NCBI GenBank assembly: GCA_950097015.1
Contig: CATNEN010000038.1
Span: forward strand, 20,274,001-20,338,000
Source of the DNA: Macrostomum hystrix
Taxonomy: Eukaryota > Animalia > Platyhelminthes
Reading direction: 5' to 3'
Length of the DNA: 64,000 nt
Positions 11,601-64,000 of the stretch are shown in pieces (the stretch's first letter is position 1; the number at the start of each line of letters is the position of its first letter). Made by a program: the position numbers and the translations under genes. A model generated the notes under the pieces. The model worked only from the letters and a program-made list of their open reading frames with translations, did no database searches and was not told where the DNA came from.

Positions 11601-14600
11601 GGTACTCTTATATTTCACAATATTTAGGGTTTGAGTTGATAAACAAAAGATTTACGGGCTAGGTGACTCAGTTTAGGAGCATACTTCAGTCGGGATTGAA
11701 ATGAAGACTTAAGAAGCGACTCAGTTGCCTGTTGAAGCAACTATAACAAGTGAGATTATTTTACAGCGCTATCGTTGGGGACTAATCACTAATCTGGAGC
11801 CCTGTAATTAGTCCTTAGTGGGCCAAAGACGGCAAAGTTAGACAAAGTAAAGGGTATTATGAAACCGAAGCTTTAACTATTACATAATCAAGTTTTTAGA
11901 GCAGACAAACAAAGAGCATTGAATATTTTATGGGACCGCTATCTACAGAGGCCTATATCGACTGTATTATATAATATATATATGGTCTTATCCACAGAAT
12001 AACTGGCTATAGTCTTCACTTTCAGTGACCGAGCTTCAAAGTATAAAGATTGACGCAATCAGATTTTTCTACTCTATTTTAGCCAGACAGCACACCACTC
12101 CTAACCGGGCGAAACCTTCTCTAGATAAATAATAAATATAACTGGAGAAGGTTTAGAAACAGACAATTTCCACTGAAAATGTAGAACTAGCAAAGCTAGA
12201 ATGAGGAGTAGAGAAGGTAGGGAAAGTAGATTCGGAAGTAGATAAAATAGATTCGGAAGTAGATAATGTAGATTCGGAAGTAGATAAAGTACGAGCTAGA
12301 TTCAGAAGTAGAGATGGTAGATTCAGAAGTAGAGATTTTAGATTCAGAAGTAGAGATGTTAGATTCAGAAGTAGAGATGGTAGATTCAGAAGTAGAGATG
12401 TTAGATTCAGAAGTAGAGATGGTAGATTCAGAAGTAGAGATGGTAGATTCAGAAGTAGAGATTTTAGATTCAGAAGTAGAGATGTTAGATTCAGAAGTAG
12501 AGATGGTAGATTCAGAAGTAGAGATGGTAGATTCAGAAGTAGAGATGGTAGATTCAGAAGTAGAGATGGTAGATTCAGAAGTAGAGATGTTAGATTCAGA
12601 AGTAGAGATGGTAGATTCAGAAGTAGAGATGGTAGATTCAGAAGTAGAGATGGTAGATTCAGAAGTAGAGATGGTAGATTCAGAAGTAGAGATGGTAGAT
12701 TCAGAAGTAGAGATGGTAGATTCAGAAGTAGAGATGGTAGATTCAGAAGTAGAGATGTTAGATTCAGAAGTAGAGATGTTAGATTCAGAAGTAGAGATGT
12801 TAGATTCAGAAGTAGAGATGGTAGATTCAGAAGTAGAGATGGTAGATTCAGAAGTAGAGATGGTAGATTCAGAAGTAGAGATGGTAGATTCAGAAGTAGA
12901 GATGGTAGATTCAGAAGTAGAGATGGTAGATTCAGAAGTAGAGATGGAAGATTCAGAAGTAGAGATGGTAGATTCAGAAGTAGAGATGGTAGATTCAGAA
13001 GTAGAGATGGTAGATTCAGAAGTAGAGATGGTAGATTCAGAAGTAGAGATGGTAGATTCAGAAGTAGAGATGGTAGATTCAGAAGTAGAGATGGTAGATT
13101 CAGAAGTAGAGATAGTTGATTCAGAAGTAGAAATGGTAGATTCAGAAGTAGAGATGTTAGATTCAGAAGTAGAGATGGTAGATTCAGAAGTAGAGATGTT
13201 AGATTCAGAAGTAGAGATGGTTGATTCAGAAGTAGAGATGTTAGATTCAGAAGTAGAGATGGTAGATTCAGAAGTAGAGATGGTAGATTCAGAAGTAGAG
13301 ATGGAAGATTCAGAAGTAGATATGGAAGATTCAGAAGTAGAGATGTTAGATTCAGAAGTAGAGATGGTAGATTCAGAAGTAGAGATGGTAGATTCAGAAG
13401 TAGAGATGGTAGATTCAGAAGTAGAGATGGTAGATTCAGAAGTAGAGATGGTAGATTCAGAAGTAGAGATGGTAGATTCAGAAGTAGAGATGGTAGATTC
13501 AGAAGTAGAGATGGTAGATTCAGAAGTAGAGATGGTAGATTCAGAAGTAGAGATGGTAGATTCAGAAGTAGAGATGGTAGATTCAGAAGTAGAGATGTTA
13601 GATTCAGAAGTAGAGATGGTAGATTCAGAAGTAGAGATGTTAGATTCAGAAGTAGAGATGGTAGATTCAGAAGTAGAGATGGTAGATTCAGAAGTAGAGA
13701 TGGTAGATTCAGAAGTAGAGATGGTAGATTCAGAAGTAGAGATGTTAGATTCAGAAGTAGAGATGTTAGATTCAGAAGTAGAGATGGTAGATTCAGAAAT
13801 AGAGCAGGATGGAATTGTTCCCCAGTCCCACAGCAATCTTACCGTGCTCATCCAATACAAAATCAGCGCCATTCATTTTCTCATTGGCGTAAGCCACAAA
13901 AACGTTGGCTTCTGCAAAGAAGTCGTCAAGACTGGTCACCTGGAGATTGTCAATTTTGCGGTTTTAGATGTCTGAGATACCCTAAAAGCACTCTGTCCCA
14001 TCCTGTCTACTACCATCTCAAGTCCACCTCAAATTGCCTCTCTCAACATGTCTATTTCAGCCTGTCCATCTTAGCCTGTCCATTTCAGCCTGTCCATCTT
14101 AGCCTGTCCATCTTAGCCTGTCCATCTCAGCCTGTCCATCTCAGCCTGTCCATCTCAGCCTGTCCATTTCAGCCTGTCCATCTTAGCCTATCCATCTCAG
14201 CCTGTCCATTTCAGCCTGTCCATCTTAGCCTATCCATCTCAGCCTGTCCATCTCAGCCTGTCCATCTCAGCCTGTCCATCTCAGCCTGTCCATTTTATTC
14301 TGTCCATCCCAGCCTCTCCGTCTCACCAGTTTCTTTTCCTGCAGGCTGTAGAGTCGGCGCACAGCTCCGCTAGCCAGCCGCACAGCTTGGCTAACATCGG
14401 CCATGACACGGTCAAAGGACTTGGCTGTGCGGCCGTTCAGCAGGACTCGGGCGGCTCGCCTTGGCCTCGGCAGTCCGCCTCCGGGCAGAATCACGGCGAT
14501 GCGACCGCGGGCGCTGGCAGCTGCTGATGTTGCCAAAACCATCGCGCCGGTACCGCCACCGATGGACGGTGTCATCTGCTGCTGCTGCTGCTGCCTAACT

Positions 14601-14926
14601 GCAGTCTGTTTGCCACTAGAAGCAGAATAAGCCAACCGTTTGTACTTATCAAACGATGCGCAAACGTAGCCGCCGCCGTCGACAAGATCCTGCAGCTGTC
14701 GAACTCGCCTGCCAGTTGACTGGTCGAACAGGAATCGGACACCCTTCGGCAGGATGTTCCTGTCACAGACCGGACCCTGTGTCAAATCATCCAGCAAGGC
14801 TTCGAATGTTCTATATCGATCCGGTGGTAGCGCCATCTGGAATCCGCAATAGTGACTGTCGCCATTTCGATAGAATCGAACCCTGACGGCCTTTCTTGGC
14901 TGTTGGATTGAGTCGTTGCTGCTCAT
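8258..14926 (-). CDS. Doublecortin-family protein with two DCX domains (DCX/DCLK-like, no kinase domain seen); exons 14926-14327, 13939-13843, 9798-9736, 9345-9290, 8707-8258
   Basis: DCX1: KAVRVRFYRNGD..RYRTFEALLDDLT..LPKGVRFLF..LVDGGGYVCAS. DCX2: PRRAARVLLNGRTAKSFDRVMADVSQAVRLASGAVRRLYSL..VTSLDDFFAEANVFVAYANEK. The downstream exons join in phase (0,1,1,0) and encode a Q/S-rich tail. The 3' exons are less certain and additional small exons are possible. Confidence 0.85.
9913..11575. repeat. 14-bp minisatellite (GGGAAGAGAGAAAT) in a DCX intron, present as two tandem-duplicated blocks
   Basis: Tandem units, with the unique flank repeated at 10430-10517 and 11575-11660. Confidence 0.95.
12297..13800. 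repeat. 21-bp minisatellite (TAGATTCAGAAGTAGAGATGG) in a DCX intron
   Basis: About 70 near-identical units lying just inside the donor at 13842. Confidence 0.97.
14057..14292. repeat. 14-bp minisatellite (TCAGCCTGTCCATC) in DCX intron 1
   Basis: Tandem units. Confidence 0.95.
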
Positions 14927-26040: not shown

Positions 26041-29000
26041 ATGGCAGGAAGCTGGTGGAAGCGCCTACCATTAGTTCACATTCTGGTCATCTGGGGGTTC
26101 TTAATAATTGGCCTGAGTATCAACTTTCTGCAACTTTTAACCCTGCTAATTTGGCCAGTTAATCGCAGCCTATATAGAAAGCTGAACTCTTGGCTAGCCT
26201 TTCAAATGTGGTGTCAATTCACTGTGCTAGCTCAGTGGTATGCCAACTGCAAAATACACTTGTTTGTCAATCCCAACCATGTGCCTTACCTGGGCACCGA
26301 GCATAGCATGGTAATTATGAATCACCGCTACGAGATTGACTGGATGCTGGGTTGGTGCGCCGTGGAACGATTGGGAATGCTCGGAGTGAGTCATTGTGTC
26401 GTTACTACTCTGCTCTTTATCTTTTAATCGTCTGCAGATTATCTTTCAGCTCCATGCCTGCTTTCCTCACTAATCCGCCCCAATTTCCTCATTAATCTAC
26501 TTCCACTACTCCCAATAATCTATCCCCACTTCTCTCACTAATCCTCCCCATTTTGAAAGATTTGGGGATCTCAAATCTCAATTTATGGTGAGATTCCTCT
26601 CATCCTGTCCTCTCACCCTGCCCTCTCACCCTGTCCTCTCACCCTGTCTTCGCACCCTCTTCTCTCACCCTCTCCTCTCACCCTGTTTTCTCATCCTGTC
26701 TTCTGACCCCATTCTCTTACCCATGTTCTCTTATCTCTTCTCCACCTCTCCTTTCATCTATCTTTTCACCCTGTCTTCTCTCACTAATCCGCTCCCGCTT
26801 CTCACTAATCCGCCCTATTTTTCTCATTAATCCGCCCCACCTCCCTCATTAATCCGCCCCACTTCCCTCACTAATCCGCCCCACTTTCCTCACTAATCCG
26901 CCCCACTTTCCTCACTAATCCGCCCCCACTTTCCTTATTCATCCGGCCTTAACTTCCTTATTATTCCGCTTCTCAGCCTGTACTTTTTCATTCGCTTTCT
27001 CACCACCCCCAGAGCTCCAAGATGGTCGGCAAGAAGGTGCTGAAGTTCATCCCAATCATCGGCTGGTCCTTCTACTTCACCGAGTGCATGTTCCTGTCGC
27101 GCAATCTCGATCACGATCGTCGCGTACTGGAGTACCACTCCAAGGAGATGGTCTCCTATCCAAAGGAACATCCGGTTAGCGTCCTGTTCTTTCCCGAAGG
27201 CACCCGATTCACCGAGGCCAAACTGGCTGCCTGCAATCAGGTAACTTTGGCTAGTCGGGACTTACCATTTAAGATCGATAGACCGAATTTTAATCCTCAA
27301 ATTGGGATTAACAAACCAAATTTTGATCCTAACATTTGGATTTACAAACTTAATCTGAATCCTCAAATCCTGTGTGATTGGGATAACACAGACTGAATTC
27401 TAATCCTAAAATCGGGATCACACAGACTGATTTCTGATCCTCAAATCGGGATCGCACAGACAGATTTCTGATCCTCAAATTGGGATCACACAGACTGAAT
27501 TCTAAGCATCAATAATAATATTTTTTTAATAATTGATTACACCTGCCCCAATCGGGTCAGATGTGCAGCCGACAGCACAGCCACAGCTAATGCGCGGCGC
27601 ATCTGAAGGCTGTGTACAACTGTTCAGTCCACGGACTGGGGGGACGCCATACCCACCTTCAATTATCCCAGCTGATGCTGGTACCCATTTAACAGCTGGG
27701 TGAACTGAAGCAATGCAGAGTTAAGTGTCTTGCTAAAGGACGCAAATTGTTCCAGTGGAGTCGGGAATCTAACCCCCGACCTTCAAGTCGTGAGTCCGAC
27801 GCCCTAACCAATAGGCTACAACCTCTGGCTTTAGCCAGGATCAACCTGGGCTTAAAAAATCAAATCCCCAATCCCCTACGTGCGATCTGCAGCCCACATT
27901 CAACAAAGCTCAGGATATTGTTGCCAAAACTACAGGTAGCGGCCAGCAAGGGCCTCCCAGCAATGCGCCATCTGCTGTTACCCAGAACACGCGGCTTCGT
28001 ACTAATGCTGCAAGCTCTGAAAGGTCGGGCCGCCTGCATCTACGACATGACTCTAGCCCTGCCTGCTGGCGACGATCCGACCCTCATGGCAACTCTGAAT
28101 GGCGAGCCCTGTCAGGCTGATTTCCTCTGCCGGCGAATCCCCCTGGAGGATGTGCCCAGCGACGAGGCAGGGTGCGCCAAATGGCTGTTCGATCTGTATA
28201 AGAAAAAGGTGAGCACCCTTGTATCCTGTTCTCTCACCCTGTTCTCTCACCCCTGTCCTCTCACCCTGTTCTCTCACCCCTGTCCTCTCACCCTGTTCTC
28301 TCACCCCTGTCCTCTCACCCTGTTCTCTCACCCTGTTCTCTCACCCCTGTCCTCTCACCCTGTTCTCTCACCCTGTTCTCTCACCCTGTCCTCTCACCCT
28401 GTTCTCTCACCCTGTTCTCTCACCCCTGTCCTCTCACCCTGTTCTCTCACCCTGTTCTCTCACCCCTGTCCTCTCACCCTGTTCTCTCACCCTGTTCTCT
28501 CACCCCTGTTCTCTCACCCTGTTCTCTCACCCTGTCCTCTCACCCTGTCCTCTCACCCTGTCCTCTAATCCTGTCCTCTCATCCTGTCCTCTCACCCTGT
28601 CCTCTCACCCTGTCCTCTCATCCTGTCCTCTCATCCTGTCCTCTCACCCTGTCCTCTCACCCTGTCCTCTCACCCTGTCCTCTTATCCTGTCCTCTCACC
28701 CTGTCCTCTCATCTTGTCCTCTCATCCTGTCCTCTCATCCTGTCTTCTGACCCTGTCTTCTAGCTCTGTCTTCTTATCTGTGTCTCTTTACCCTCTTATT
28801 CGATCAATAAATCATTGAGACCCCATTTGTGAACACGCGCAGGACGACACGCTGGAGTATTACTACAAGCACGGCAAATTCCCGGACACTGATGTGACCG
28901 ATATTCATCTTGCTCGCCGGTACAAAGACATCACCGCCTATCTAGTCTGGCTAGCCTGGTCCGTCATAGTATTCGCAGTCTTTGTCGCGCCCTATATTGT

Positions 29001-33770: not shown

Positions 33771-34299
33771 CATTATGCTTCACAGCTAATGTTAGTATCA
33801 TTCCTAAAATGTGGAAAATTAGAAAATATTCTATAGCTATTATAGGAAAACTCCAAAGAGGATTACATGGATTACAAGGATTTGATTTAAAGTTGCATAT
33901 ATAAATATAATTAGTCCTCGGTAAACATTTTCTACTATTAGTAGTGTTTTTCAATACGAGCAGCATTTGTAAGATATATAGATTAAAAAATAAATTAAAC
34001 ACGAAATTTCAAGACGAGGTGCTTGCAAACGCAACAACAAAACACAGGTCGATCTAATTAGCCATTCTCCCAACGCGATGCGGTTGCAACAGCTCTTGTA
34101 GTTTTTATTTAGTCATTTAGAAAGTTAACTTCATTTAATCAATAATGAACAAAAACTGTCATTTCCACGTGCCGCTAATGGGCCGTTTTATTTATCATCG
34201 TCTCTTTAGGCGAAAAGCGAATGAACTCTGCAGCCCGGAGTAAAATGATTAGAAGTTAGCATCTTGACTGGTTGATTTTCAGTTCACTTATTTTTTCAT

Positions 34300-34859
34300 C
34301 TATTCTTCTCCATATTCGCTCTCTGGATCAATGTCCCTTTTATCGATCATGGGATCGCGGAGGATTCTCTTGTCGATCATTGGATCGCGGAGGATTCTCT
34401 TGTCGATCATGGGATCGCGAAGGATTCTCTTGTCGATCATTGGATCGCGGAGGATTCTCTTGTCGATCATTGGATCGCGGAGGATTCTCTTGTCGATCAT
34501 GGGATCGCGAAGGATTCTCTTGTCGATCATTGGATCGCGAAGGTTTCTCTTGTCGATCATGGGATCGCGGAGGATTCTCTTGTCGATCATGGGATCGCGG
34601 AGGATTCTCTTGTCGATCATGGGATCGCGGAGGTTTCTCTTGTCGATATCTTTGAGTTCTCCTTGCACCCAGACCTTGGTCTCATCATCTTTAGGAGAGC
34701 ATAAAGTTGTTGGCAAAACTGAGGCTCCTAAAAGTGCAAAGGGTATTTCGGCAACCAATAAAATAAAGAAGATATAATCTTCGAAACAATAGGCAAGCAA
34801 AATGAGAATTTACCGATAACAATAGCAGACCATAGGACTAGCAGAGCTTTACCGTCCAT
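34300..34859 (-). CDS. Putative neuropeptide/prohormone precursor (157 aa); exons 34859-34814 and 34727-34300
   Basis: AAACCATGG start and an 86-nt GT-AG phase-1 intron. Signal-peptide-like MDGKALLVLWSAIVIGASVLPTTLC, an acidic spacer, ten KR-flanked (I/N)LRDPMID units and an acidic tail DIDPESEYGEE. Variation between repeats is almost all synonymous in this frame. Confidence 0.85.
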
Positions 34860-35394
34860 GGTTTAACTGAAAGTCTTACAATTAGTTATAAGCAAGCTAG
34901 CAAGTGTAGCGACTGTTAGAGTTGCAATCCTTTTTATGATAAATTGTCTGCCGATTCCAAATTAGTAGATCGGCTGCTGAGTGGATAGGATTTATTCCCG
35001 GCGGCTAATATCCCACCGCCCTCTTCTGATTGGCTAGCCAATCGTCATCGAACACATTCACATTGATGTCAAACCAGAAGAATTGCTGAGAGGTTGATAA
35101 AAAACAAGTTGAGTGCATTTTACAATCACTCAAAAGAAGTATTTTGTCCGCCAATGTAAATAGTGTACAGCATTGTAAGGAAGAGGAAAAAAGTATATGC
35201 TAACATATTTGCGTAGAAATTCAGTTGGACAAAAACCTGTACTACAATGATGATGATGTTTTATAGAGTCAATGTTTTATAGGCTTTGAAAAACTAAGAC
35301 ATAGTCTTTTATCTCAAGACACAAGAGCTACAGCTCCTCTTGTAGAGGCTGAAATCACTTTTAGATAAGCGTGCAGCTCTCCTCTTTCTCTAAA

Positions 35395-59247: not shown

Positions 59248-61071
59248 TGAGTGGTCCGTATAAGGAATGACGATGTATAAGGAATGACCGCACGCACTAC
59301 GGTTAGTGTCAATGGAGTTCAGGCCAGCTGGGGTCTGAGTTTTCAGGAGATTAATGAGTCTGAGTTCCATTTATCTTCTCCTGCGTTGAGTTGCCTCTCT
59401 GTGCGTCTCACATTCAGGGCTGAGGTACCAAAGACCCATGAACCGTAAGTCCAGCAGGCTGTGGTCTGTAGAGCGAAAATGTCTTGAGACCGGGGTATCT
59501 TTTGCCAGTCTAATGTCGCTCAGGTGGGCTTGCAGTCGGACTTTAAGGGCCCCTCCTGTCTCTCCAATGTAGACACAACGGTCATTACAGCTCCTGCATA
59601 AGATTGAGTACACAACGTTTCTAGAGTCGCAACGGACTTTCTGGCAGATACTATATACCATGTTGGTAGAGTTGGATCCTGGACAGATCTGTCCAAATTG
59701 GCCATGTTGTCTACACACCCGACAGGTTTCATTATTGCAGTTGTGGAAGCCAAAATCCCACTGGCGGTCGATGAAGAAACCCAGTTGGATGAGAGCGGAG
59801 TATTTGGCGTTCCGAATAGAGCGGACAGAATGACCTTGTTTCTTAAGGATGCCCATTAGGCTAGAGCTGGCTCGGTCAAAGTCTTGCTTGTGTGTACAGC
59901 GACGGGCATAGCGTAGAAATTGGGATTTTAAAGTACCTTTAAAGGTGTGCTTCGGGTGGAAGGAGTCAGGATTAAGCAAGTGGCGGAATCAGTCGGCTTG
60001 AAATAGATGGAAGTCGTTAGAACCTTCATATTGCCCACTTCGGTGAGGGATACGCAACAGTCAAGGAAGTTGACACAGTCTTTACTGTACTGCATAGAGA
60101 GTCTGATGCTGGTGTCGAACTCGTTCAAATGTTGGTAGAGTTGCTTTAGTTGAGTTTCTGTGCCCACAAACACCATGAAAATGTCGTCGATATAGCGTCT
60201 GTACAGACGTGGAGTGAAAGGGGCATTTACCAATGCCCTGGATTCCCAGTCGGACATGAAAATATTGGCATAGGAGGGAGCGAAGGTCTTCCCCATGCTG
60301 GTGCCCTTGATTTGCAAGAAGCGACAGTTATTAAAAACGAAATCATTCTGGTTAAGATTAATATCAAGGAGTTTGAGCAGTTGACGGTCCGGTTTGGATG
60401 GCGCAGGGAAATTGTTGAACGCCTCACTGACAACGGTTATCCCCTTGTCCGTTGGAATGTTGGTGTACAGGGATTCAACATCTAACGTGACCAGGAAGAC
60501 GGACTCGTGAATGTTGAACGATAAGTCGTTGATAATAGCTTGGAAATGGTCAGTGTCACGGATATAGGAATCCTGCTCTCTTGCAATAGGTTGTAGAAAA
60601 TAATCAATGAATTTCGCGCTCATGTAGCTCTCCGAACTGCAGTCCGAGGCAATGGGCCTGCCAGGCGGAATGCCGGGAACGGGCCAGGTAGCAGGGTCCT
60701 TGTGGACTTTAGAAGATCCTGTCCCTGGGTTCCAAGGGAGGAATTAACTGATTAAACTGCTGGTTGCTGATTATCTTATCCCTACGGAGTTCTTGAAAGA
60801 TTTCCCTAATCACAGAACATGTTCTACTTCTTGAGGCAAAATCGACAGGACGGTAAAAGTCTGTGTTGGAGAGTTGCCTGAAAGCTTCAATGATGTAAGC
60901 ATCCCTATCAAGAACAACCATGTTGCTGCCTTTGTCCGCTGGTTTGATGACAATGCTGCGGTTGTTTTGGAGATTCTGGAGCGCTTGTTTTTCGGCTGGT
61001 TGCATATTGGTTCTGTTAAAAGCAGTACTAGGAACAGGAATGTAAGGAGTGCTGAGCCGAGAGATGATTTG
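59248..61071 (-). mobile_element. Decayed Penelope-like retroelement (RT + GIY-YIG endonuclease)
   Basis: EKQALQNLQNNRSIVIKPADKG, KVHK..PGRPIAS, LDVESLYTNIP, QIKGTSMGKTFAPSYANIFM, RRYIDDIF, VNFLD, YFKPTD, HPKH..SQFLRYARRC, Cys linker, VYSILCRSC..VYIGETG..RLQAH, E..LI..L.T..P.GLN. Frameshifts at ~60710 and ~59985 and an in-frame stop at 59371-59373. Confidence 0.93.
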
Positions 61072-61420: not shown

Positions 61421-64000
61421 TTATTGTTTGTAGCTAAGCACTTTGCTACGCGCAGCCCTGGGATGCTGTCGTGTGGCGACACAATCGCTAGGGTTAGCGG
61501 TTGGCTGGCCGGCAGACTGGCCGGCGGACTGGCCGGCAGACTGGCCGGCGGACTGGCCGGCGGACTGACCAGCAGAGTGGCCGGCAGACTGGCCGGCGGA
61601 CTGGCCGGCGGACTGACCAGCAGAGTGGCCGGCAGACTGACCGGCGGACTGGCCGGCAGACTGGCCGGCAGACTGGCCGGCAGACTGACCAGCAGAGTGG
61701 CCGGCAGACTGGCCGGCAGACTGGCCAGCAGAGTGGCCGGCAGACTGGCCGGCGGACTGACCAGCAGAGTGGCCGGCAGACTGGCCGGCAGACTGGCCAG
61801 CAGAGTGGCCGGCAGACTGGCCGGCGGACTGACCAGCAGAGTGGCCGGCAGACTGGCCGGCGGACTGGCCGGTGGACTGACCAGCAGAGTGGCCGGCAGA
61901 CTGGCCGGCGGACTGGCCGGTGGACTGACCAGCAGAGTGGCCGGCAGACTGGCCGGCGGACTGGCCGGCGGACTCTATCAGGGGCCGCAGTTGAGTGACG
62001 TGTCGCATGCACGATTGTTCGCCGCGTTGAAGGACGCACGTGTCTCCCTGGACCAGCTTGACAGTCCACGGAGAAGGCTCAAAAGGCAGTTGAAGCTTGT
62101 TGCGCGGTTGCTGCTTTCGTAGAACTTTGATGCCGTCAATGATGCCGTGCTCCTGGGCAGCCTTGCGGTCATCGAATCTTGATTTCATATCTTGCACGTA
62201 ATTCCGGTGCCAGTCTTGAACTTCTTCATGATTCACCTCGACCGGCTGAGACGGCTTAGTGGTCGGGATGCCATCGTTCATCTTCCTGCCCATGAGGAGT
62301 TCAGCGGGTGCGCGGCCGGTTGCTCGGTGCGGTGTTGTGCGGAAAGCCAGCAGCCAGTCCTCGATGGCCTCCTTCCAGTTACGCCCTTCGGCCACAGCCG
62401 TCTGGATGACTTTTCCAATGCTCCGGTTGACTCGCTCTGTCGCTCCATTGGATTCAGGGTGGAGCGGGCAGATAAGGCGATGTCGAATGCCATAGGTGGT
62501 GAGGAAGCTGCGGAAAGCGGCTGAATTGAATGGCGGGCCGTTGTCAGTGACCACCTCGATAGGGACGCCGAATCTACCGAACAGTCGGCGAAGGTGCGGG
62601 CTCACGCTCTCCGCTGTCGATGAGTTCAGGAAGCTGACTTCTGGATATTTTGAGTAGAGGTCTGTGATGACTAGCAGCATCTGGCCCTGTACTGGTCCGT
62701 AGAAGTCCATGCCTAGAGTGAGCCAGGCACCGTCTGGGATCTGCGTTGGTTTAAGAGGCGTTTGACGCGCTCCAGTGGAGGCGGCCTGGCAGAGCGTGCA
62801 GCACTGAACAAAGCTCTCGCAGTCGCTGCGCATGCGAGGCCACCAGACTTTCGTTTGCAGCCGCTTCAGGGTTCGGTCAGCGCCTAGATGGCCGGTGTGC
62901 GCTAGTTGGAGGACAGGCCTGCGCAGTGTCTCCGGGATGACGATGAGGTCGCCCCTTAGCAGGACGCCGTCACTCTCTGAGAGCTCGTTGCTGACGGTCT
63001 TGTAGGAGCGCTGGGCCGGGTCGCGGATATTCCAGTTACCGGTTCGGATGGCGCTTAGCGCCGCCTGGATGCCGCTGTCGGTGCGCGACGCTTCCCGCAC
63101 TTGAGCGAGGCTGAAGCCCTTTGGCACAGCTCCGGCCGACACGGCGTTGACGAAGGCGGTGTCAAGTTCTTCACCAACGTTCCTCCTTGATTCTGGCAGT
63201 GGCTGCCGGCTTAGCAGGTCGGCTGGATTGGTCGGCCCGGGTCGGTAAATCAGATCGAAGCGGAGGTGCTGGATGCGCAATGCCATCCGTTCGATTCGTG
63301 GCGGTGGACGAGAGCCAGGCTTGAACAGCGGCACGAGTGGTCGGTGGTCTGTTACTACAGTGAAGCCTGGGTCTCCGGCTAGGTAGTGTTCAAACTTCAA
63401 GCACCCGAATTTGATGGCCAGAGCTTCTCGCTCTATCTGCGCGTACCGCTGTTCCACTGCTGAAAGGGCTCTGCTGGCGTAAGCCACGGGTCTGCTGCTG
63501 CCGTCCGGCTGCCTCTGCGTGAGGATGGCGCCCAGTCCGACCGGGGAGGCGTCCACTAGGAGCTCGGTTTGCCGCCTGCGGTCGAAGAAGGCGAGCGTTT
63601 CCGCGGCGCCTATTGCTTTTTTAATGCTTTCGAATGCCGCAGTGTGCTTATCCGTCCACTCCCAGACCTGGCCCTTCTTTGTCAATTGACGTAGGGGCCC
63701 GGCGAGGTGAGCGAAGTTTGGGACGAATTTTGACAAGAAGTTCGCGGTGCCGAGGAATGAGCGGACGTCGGAAACGTTTTCAGGTTGCCGAAAGCTCTGC
63801 ATGGCCTCAATTTTCTCAGCAGCTGGCTCCATGCCCCGAGCAGTCAGGCGCATGCCGAGAAACTCGATGGACGGTCGGGAGAACCTGCACTTGTCCCTGT
63901 TGAGGGTGATGCCGTACTCACGCAGGCGCTGAAGGCACGCGTCCAGTCTCTTATGGTGTTGCTTTAAATCAGATGCGTAGATCACCACGTCATCGTGCGC
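61421..64000 (-). mobile_element. pol: Ty3/Gypsy LTR retrotransposon pol (RT C-terminus, RNase H, integrase), 5'-truncated by the window edge
   Basis: Intact ORF of more than 855 aa: KCRF..EFLG, DASPVGLGAILTQ, YAQIEREALA, TDHRPL, H-TGH..C..C zinc motif, DFYGP..TDNGPPF..NGATERVNR. The RT-RH-INT order is that of Ty3/Gypsy. Confidence 0.96.

Follow-up and report, generated by a model that had tools for sequence, protein, structure and literature searches.

Is a tandem array of 30-bp units in the genome of the flatworm Macrostomum hystrix a minisatellite, or is it the coding exon of a small gene for secreted peptides? The question is raised by an array on the minus strand of a 64,000-nucleotide (nt) stretch of contig CATNEN010000038.1 (positions 20,274,001 to 20,338,000 of the forward strand; hereafter the window, with positions counted from its first letter). 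A first-pass annotation, made from the letters alone, had proposed that the array conceals a neuropeptide precursor, possibly of a new family, in which ten short peptides are each bounded by Lys-Arg (KR) pairs. The evidence set out below shows that the array is part of an expressed gene whose reading frame is under selection, and suggests that the gene probably specifies a secreted prepropeptide yielding diffusible signalling peptides, most likely neural ones.

The layout of the gene was established by reading the minus strand of 34100-35100 directly. A start codon at 34859-34857, in the context AAACC-ATG-G, opens a spliced product of 157 amino acids (aa; 15+1+141) encoded by two exons. The coding part of exon 1 (34814..34859, 46 nt) holds 15 codons of a putative signal peptide and the first base of a Gly codon, and is followed by a phase-1 intron of 86 nt (34728..34813), which begins with GT at 34813 and ends with AG at 34729-34728. 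The coding part of exon 2 (34727..34300) is an open frame that ends in TAG at 34302-34300. In translation it starts with the remainder of the putative signal peptide, G-ASVLPTTLC (34699..34727), and continues with an acidic spacer of 19 residues that closes with a degenerate unit, ELKDID, and is followed by the first KR (34636..34698). Ten in-frame units of 30 nt come next (34336..34635), units 1 and 4 encoding NLRDPMID-KR and the other eight ILRDPMID-KR, and the frame closes with an acidic C-terminal tail, DIDPESEYGEE, and its TAG stop (34300..34335). Eleven KR sites bound the ten 8-mers. The start codon, intron and 157-aa product that the first-pass annotation had described are therefore borne out by direct reading and translation, as are its eight ILRDPMID and two NLRDPMID peptides, their KR flanks and the acidic tail. 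Tandem Repeats Finder (TRF) reports the same segment as one array (34343-34647, period 30, 10.2 copies, 95% matches, no indels), and a DNA search of the genome found the window gene to be single-copy at the nucleotide level.

The N-terminus has the features expected of a secreted protein. By inspection it carries one basic residue near the start, an uncharged hydrophobic stretch of ~16 residues that spans the exon junction, and small residues at −3/−1 in T-L-C; exon 1 has a mean Kyte-Doolittle hydropathy of 1.65, and a single K and a single D lie close to its N-terminal end. Signal peptide cleavage is predicted to occur after T-L-C, which would fit the −3/−1 rule. Like features are present at the N-termini of a paralogue and of the Macrostomum lignano orthologue, both described below, though the sequences differ.

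Evidence for transcription and splicing was sought among ten sequencing runs, drawn from four studies, that contain the locus. The contigs of four runs were aligned; the aligned material consists of assembled contigs, three of the four runs are RNA by guess, and strand was taken from the splice dinucleotides. In three runs from two studies, X1 (organism A), X2 (organism B) and X7 (organism D), contigs join 34726 to 34813 and skip exactly 86 nt, the ends of which read CT..AC on the plus strand and hence GT..AG on the minus strand. This is the spliced transcript of minus-strand polarity that the first-pass annotation had looked forward to. All pieces from X7 are at least 99% identical to the window. 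In the aligned runs, contig depth is 0 inside the intron and upstream of ~34944, with 34975-35150 uncovered, and no spliced-leader letters are attached to the transcript contigs. The mRNA is ~0.8 kb long. Its 5' untranslated region covers 34860..34944, and transcription is likely to start at ~34944, where the X1 and X7 contigs both stop; its 3' untranslated region covers 34047..34299, and the 3' contig pieces end at ~34047-34056, some 50 nt beyond an AATAAA at 34109-34104. About 85-98 nt upstream of the 5' end, in sequence outside the cover of the transcript contigs, an inverted pair, ATTGG-CTAG-CCAAT (35029..35042, minus strand), is a possible NF-Y/CCAAT promoter element. The transcript was assembled at a word depth of about 125-136 in a 46-Mb run, word depth being a poor measure of abundance, and is present also in a sediment metatranscriptome. 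These data establish that the intron is genuine and that the gene is expressed and spliced.

Independent evidence that the array is read as protein came from the differences among its units. The units are 93-100% identical at the DNA level, and the ten vary at six sites. Five of the six are synonymous third positions (CTC/CTT, CCC/CCA, GAC/GAT, AAG/AAA and AGA/AGG), and the sixth is an ATC/AAC change (I/N) found in two units, exactly the set that had been listed at first pass. All six changes are non-synonymous in four of the five alternative frames; the exception is the antisense frame with shared third positions, where two of the six are. Given an expected synonymous fraction of 0.20-0.25, the probability of at least five synonymous sites in six is 0.002-0.005. 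The coding differences seen in the related organisms A and B and in the sediment metatranscriptome are two further synonymous changes, at 34597 and 34600 (CGC>CGT and CTC>CTT), and an in-frame insertion of 3 nt that turns I-L into I-Q-L and gives IQLRDPMID. Across the window gene and its paralogue, KR is retained through the Lys codons AAG and AAA and the Arg codons AGA, AGG and CGA; that it is strictly kept through three different Arg codons implies that the dibasic site is itself under selection. The reading frame is under purifying selection.

Comparison with a second species points the same way. A HMMER scan of 1.84 billion representative proteins returned 579 matches, among them one true relative, P0065, which is M. 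lignano PAA84435.1 (BOX15_Mlig021643g1, A0A267GEF6); the other matches that were looked at, from sources such as fish, plants and a horse relative, proved to be artefacts of periodic repeats. Its cluster mate, P0151, corresponds to PAA77719.1/PAA79507.1 (BOX15_Mlig009070g1/g2) of the same species. These orthologues, annotated only as "hypothetical protein", are 89-99 aa long and consist of a hydrophobic N-terminus, a spacer, 3-4 KR-flanked copies of ILRDPMID and an acidic tail. In alignment with the window gene the peptide and KR are identical, while identity is about 30% in the signal peptide, the spacer and the tail; the comparison agrees with a place in Macrostomum and sets the species of the window apart from M. 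lignano. The M. lignano protein differs in having one unit that reads ILRDLMID, KK at its last site, and 3-4 copies rather than the 10 of the window gene. An orthologous array had been proposed as the place to look for frameshifted units and lost KR sites; in M. lignano the length of the units, the peptide and the KR sites are all preserved, and it is the flanks of the array that diverge. A word-index homologue search with exon 2 or with the paralogue returned no match, and with the M. lignano protein it returned that protein only.

Within the M. hystrix genome, a six-frame search found one clear paralogue, at 81% identity, on contig C29 (G000:C29:2825xxx). It has an ATG, 46 coding nt, a 76-nt GT..AG phase-1 intron in the Gly codon after "T-I", a spacer and 15 copies of MLRDPMLD, so that a first coding exon of 46 nt and a phase-1 intron in a Gly codon are common to both genes. 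The consensus units of the two are identical at 24 of 30 nt, with four synonymous differences plus I>M and I>L, which place M for I at position 1 of the peptide and L for I at position 7. The paralogue differs from the window gene in lacking the acidic tail (a stop replaces the last K codon) and in having an unrelated signal-peptide sequence, and blastn found no flank similarity between the two beyond the array. The exon plan, peptide and KR flanks are thus conserved in the paralogue, and the peptide and KR flanks in the second species.

Only three loci in the 220-Mb genome match the pattern RDPM(L/I/M)DKR (controls gave 0 matches): the window gene, its paralogue and one more. This third locus (G000:C29:2858198-2858500; L023:1798-2110, plus strand) is an inverted duplicate of the MLRDPMLD gene, 33 kb from it. 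It carries an extra G in exon 1 (a +1 frameshift); its first KR is struck by a CGA>TGA change, and its units are fused into three of 45 nt (MLRDPMLRDPMLDKR) that lack every other KR; to judge from these defects it is a pseudogene. Frameshift, stop and lost KR are confined to this dead copy, which offers a contrast to the intact genes by displaying the decay expected without selection. Separately, the MERC marine metatranscriptome includes a fragment of 160 aa from some marine eukaryote (P0071, ERR1712130_690379) that contains eight 10-residue units of the form Y(L/V)RDD(T/A)(I/M)EKR. These match ILRDPMIDKR at up to 5 of 10 residues (6 counting D/E), dibasic end included, and the likeness may be due to chance or to distant relationship.

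Taken together, the sequence comparisons indicate a family of multi-copy secreted peptide precursors, xLRDPM(I/L)D, that appears to be real, new and restricted to Macrostomum. The suggestion of a new family, made tentatively at first pass, holds as far as sequence, Pfam and literature searches reach, the sequence searches having had exon 1, exon 2 or full-length natural relatives as queries. Exon 2 matched no Pfam family, the sole signal being sub-threshold Extensin_1 periodicity at 27 bits, below a cut-off of 105. The literature searches found no paper with the peptide or the M. lignano accessions, the M. lignano expressed sequence tag survey of McVeigh et al. 2009 lying outside the search, and keyword searches for Macrostomum neuropeptide surveys found nothing relevant. 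The peptide motifs are absent from the text and supplements of Collins 2010, from the Schistosoma mansoni cercaria neuropeptide paper, and from planarian and schistosome prohormone lists.

The architecture suggests how the product may be used. The signal peptide would be removed on entry into the endoplasmic reticulum; cleavage after every KR by a PC2-type convertase would follow in the regulated secretory pathway, and K and R would be trimmed off by an enzyme of the carboxypeptidase E type. Besides eight ILRDPMID and two NLRDPMID peptides, processing would release the spacer as a peptide from the N-terminal side and an acidic peptide from the C-terminal end. Amidation by PAM requires a Gly before the cleavage site, and since no Gly precedes KR, the peptides would be non-amidated. 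The leading residues vary (I, N, M and IQ), which makes LRDPM(I/L)D the probable active core. The peptides would act as diffusible signals on a G-protein-coupled receptor, most likely after release from peptidergic (pc2+/7b2+) neurons. Computed [M+H]+ values are 972.518 for ILRDPMID, 973.477 for NLRDPMID, 990.475 for MLRDPMLD and 1100.577 for IQLRDPMID. The computed charge of about −1.2 at pH 7 argues against a cationic antimicrobial role.

Several lines of evidence fit this proposal. The genome contains a match to PF05281 (7B2; 71.7 bits, on C37) and PF01483 convertase P domains in two long open frames and further fragments. In M. lignano, a PC2 promoter is active throughout the nervous system (PMC12435804), and peptidergic neurons of the pc2+/7b2+ type have been described (bioRxiv 10.1101/2024.09.03.611027). 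For both P0151 and exon 2, the protein-language-model neighbours are nearly all precursors of neuropeptides in multiple copies, of the tachykinin, allatostatin-A, FLP, PBAN, pro-TRH, PDH and DH31 families, with scores of 0.78-0.85. Precursors of the FMRFamide-like (FLP), allatostatin-A, tachykinin and pro-TRH types likewise combine a signal peptide with numerous short, nearly identical peptides set apart by dibasic sites, the peptides being conserved and the spacers free to evolve; the window precursor differs from them in having no sequence relation to them, no amidation, acidic peptides and an unusually high DNA identity between units (93-100%). A looser parallel is provided by yeast alpha-factor MFalpha1 and honeybee apidaecin, in which tandem identical peptides are freed at KR or RR by a Kex2/furin-type protease and copy number varies among alleles and species. 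The analogy is one of mechanism only, since in those precursors dipeptidyl (EA/EP) spacers follow the dibasic site and the peptides are longer and non-acidic.

A number of points weigh against a neural signalling precursor. The word "neuro" is drawn from precursor architecture alone, and the transcripts come from runs whose RNA status is guessed and whose strand is given by splice dinucleotides only. The language-model score is considered meaningful at 0.9, which makes neighbours at 0.78-0.85 leads only. An aliphatic residue right after KR reportedly disfavours convertase cleavage in vertebrates and insects, a finding attributed to Rholam (1995) and Veenstra (2000), and the residue at P1' is Ile in eight units of the window gene and Met in the paralogue; cleavage before an aliphatic P1' does have precedents. 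Peptides that are short, acidic and non-amidated make up a minority of the known neuropeptides. Finally, a Macrostomum-only family with quick change in copy number would suit a reproductive or exocrine product too.

That last point leads to the alternative that withstands the evidence best. The precursor may be made in non-neural secretory cells, such as those of prostate or seminal-fluid, pharyngeal, rhabdite or adhesive glands, where furin- or PC-type cleavage would yield peptides that leave the animal, or pass to its mating partner, and serve as a pheromone, allohormone or other secreted effector. Such a role would sit comfortably with a family found in Macrostomum only, with rapid turnover of copies (3-4 in M. 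lignano compared with 10 in the window gene and 15 in the paralogue, and a pseudogene of recent origin), and with the high transcript abundance hinted at by word depth, poor measure though it is, and by presence in the sediment metatranscriptome. Nothing speaks against it directly, yet it is harder to reconcile with 100% identity of the peptide across species, which is unusual for fast-evolving reproductive proteins, with acidic peptides, which tell against a classical cationic antimicrobial role, or with nearest feature-space neighbours that are neuropeptide precursors. We therefore regard an exocrine or reproductive product as rather unlikely, though a serious contender, and a signalling precursor, most likely neural, as the probable one.

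A neural precursor might still belong to a family already described, and the first-pass annotation had noted a loose likeness to flatworm FDPI(L/M/Q)F peptides (npp-26/spp-15). The likeness is real but weak. The Sma-npp-26 precursor has a signal peptide and KR-flanked, non-amidated 7-8-mers, e.g. NFDPILF and SYFDPILF (PMC2953531, Table 3 and supplementary file 8). Schistosoma npp-26 and Schmidtea spp-15 share with the window gene KR-flanked 7-8-mers and D-P followed by two hydrophobic residues, and Sma-npp-26 shares also the tandem arrangement behind what in the window gene is a putative signal peptide; the Schmidtea spp-15 forms are amidated, whereas the schistosome npp-26 forms are non-amidated, as predicted for the window peptides. 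What the likeness lacks is the residues that define the family. FDPIxF peptides have an F-D-P-I core and an aromatic C-terminus, and the window peptide reads R-D-P-M with a C-terminal D, for which reason the gene was kept out of npp-26/spp-15.

Nevertheless, the window gene could be a divergent macrostomid member of this family rather than the representative of a new one. In favour of such descent are the build of Sma-npp-26, the common core x-D-P-(I/M)-(L/I)-x, and a search of the genome with narrow patterns that found no FDPIxF(G)KR array but one isolated chance match, so that the slot may be vacant. Yet D-P is the sole identity, the defining aromatics (F before DP and a C-terminal F/Y) are replaced by R and D, and no sequence search links the families, all of which makes membership improbable. 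Assignment to the pedal peptide/orcokinin type was also considered and rejected. Those peptides have about 13-18 residues and an N-terminal x-F-D-x-I motif; the window peptides are 8 residues long and without an FDxI motif, and sequence searches gave no match.

The signalling reading further presumes that the precursor is cut. If it were not, the product would be a secreted repetitive protein whose 10-residue repeat serves as a structural or mucus-like polymer. Hindrance of convertases by Ile or Met at P1' would allow this, and so would the predicted disorder of the product (orthologue pLDDT, a model confidence score, 0.42). However, the protein is very short for such a role (157 aa, and 89-99 aa in M. 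lignano), the orthologue has just 3-4 repeats, and the strict retention of KR would be hard to account for in an uncut chain. An uncut polymer is accordingly very unlikely.

There remains the relationship of the coding array to the minisatellites of the genome. All remaining matches within the genome have 40-55% identity and belong to a single superfamily of non-coding arrays with 30-bp units. Its core, CCAGATCCTCARRT, has at least 7,302 occurrences, compared with 6 control matches, in arrays of 28- and 30-bp period; examples lie at L004:186-1808, L005:693-1797, L007:1229-2199, L009:1083-2281, L011:893-1813 and L012:1119-1895. One frame of these arrays reads (I/L)LxDPQ(I/V)D, and they are open in several frames, with frame shifts and frequent stops, and lack an ATG, a signal peptide and KR at regular intervals. 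In register, the gene unit matches members of the superfamily at 17-20 of 30 nt; random 30-mers in their best rotation match at a mean of 13.2 (standard deviation 1.2), and 0.13% of them reach 18. By our own count, about 17 of 23 conserved positions match the gene unit. The window array was nevertheless rejected as a non-coding member of the superfamily, on the grounds that the core itself matches at just 9 of 14 nt and that the frame is constrained, as the synonymous sites and the orthologue attest.

More generally, chance might have given a transcribed non-coding minisatellite its open frame, its ATG and its KR pattern, and the genome is indeed full of 30-bp arrays open in several frames, the commonest superfamily of which the unit resembles, but the bias toward synonymous sites, the conservation of the peptide against diverging flanks in M. 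lignano, the exon structure and intron phase kept in the paralogue, the contrasting decay of the pseudogene, and the shifted frames and stops of the non-coding arrays make this explanation extremely improbable.

The coding array does behave like a minisatellite in having near-identical units and a copy number of 3-4, 10 or 15 among genes and species. If it shared ancestry with the CCAGATCCTCARRT superfamily, a genus-specific signalling peptide would have been born from, or would have seeded, a minisatellite, and the number of its copies and the peptide dosage would still be set by minisatellite dynamics. We consider common ancestry possible but improbable, because the best match was picked among thousands of arrays. 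A second resemblance lies in a modest enrichment. The pentamer TCCCA/TGGGA occurs in 7 of 39 non-overlapping TRF array consensus units in the window, compared with 2.4 expected from shuffles (P about 0.01), and the coding array, through GAT-CCC-ATG, is one of these seven.

Elsewhere in the window, tandem arrays adjoin or enter several other open frames. An 855-aa retroelement pol frame (61421-63988, minus strand) has Pfam matches to the end of a reverse transcriptase, to RNase H and to integrase zinc-binding and core domains, and its C-terminal part crosses a GC-rich 12/36/48-bp array (61505-61974) that is read as SAGQSAGH repeats. A host exon with a doublecortin (DCX) domain (14267-14926, minus strand) adjoins a 14-bp array (14041-14325), and the open frame of a host acyltransferase C-terminal exon (27747-28568, plus strand) continues into a 13-bp array (28225-28761). 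Two adjoining open frames of another retroelement lie at 59371-60623 (minus strand); one has an RVT_1 match, and the other is Cys/His-rich and without a Pfam match.

The window gene illustrates that criteria based on repeats can fail to tell a coding exon from a minisatellite, and that repeat masking and low-complexity filters can hide genes for small secreted peptides in genomes rich in tandem repeats. The first-pass annotation had supposed that masking would remove this gene from annotations; its M. lignano orthologue does figure in one, as a hypothetical protein. The gene belongs to an undescribed and apparently Macrostomum-specific peptide family, xLRDPM(I/L)D, represented in this genome by a pair of live genes and a pseudogene. 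Transgenesis, RNA interference and a PC2 reporter line are available in Macrostomum, a model genus among flatworms, which makes the function of the peptides directly testable. The copies with 10 and 15 units, the decayed copy and the orthologue with 3-4 units also form a small natural series in which the evolution of paracopy number under selection on the peptide may be followed.

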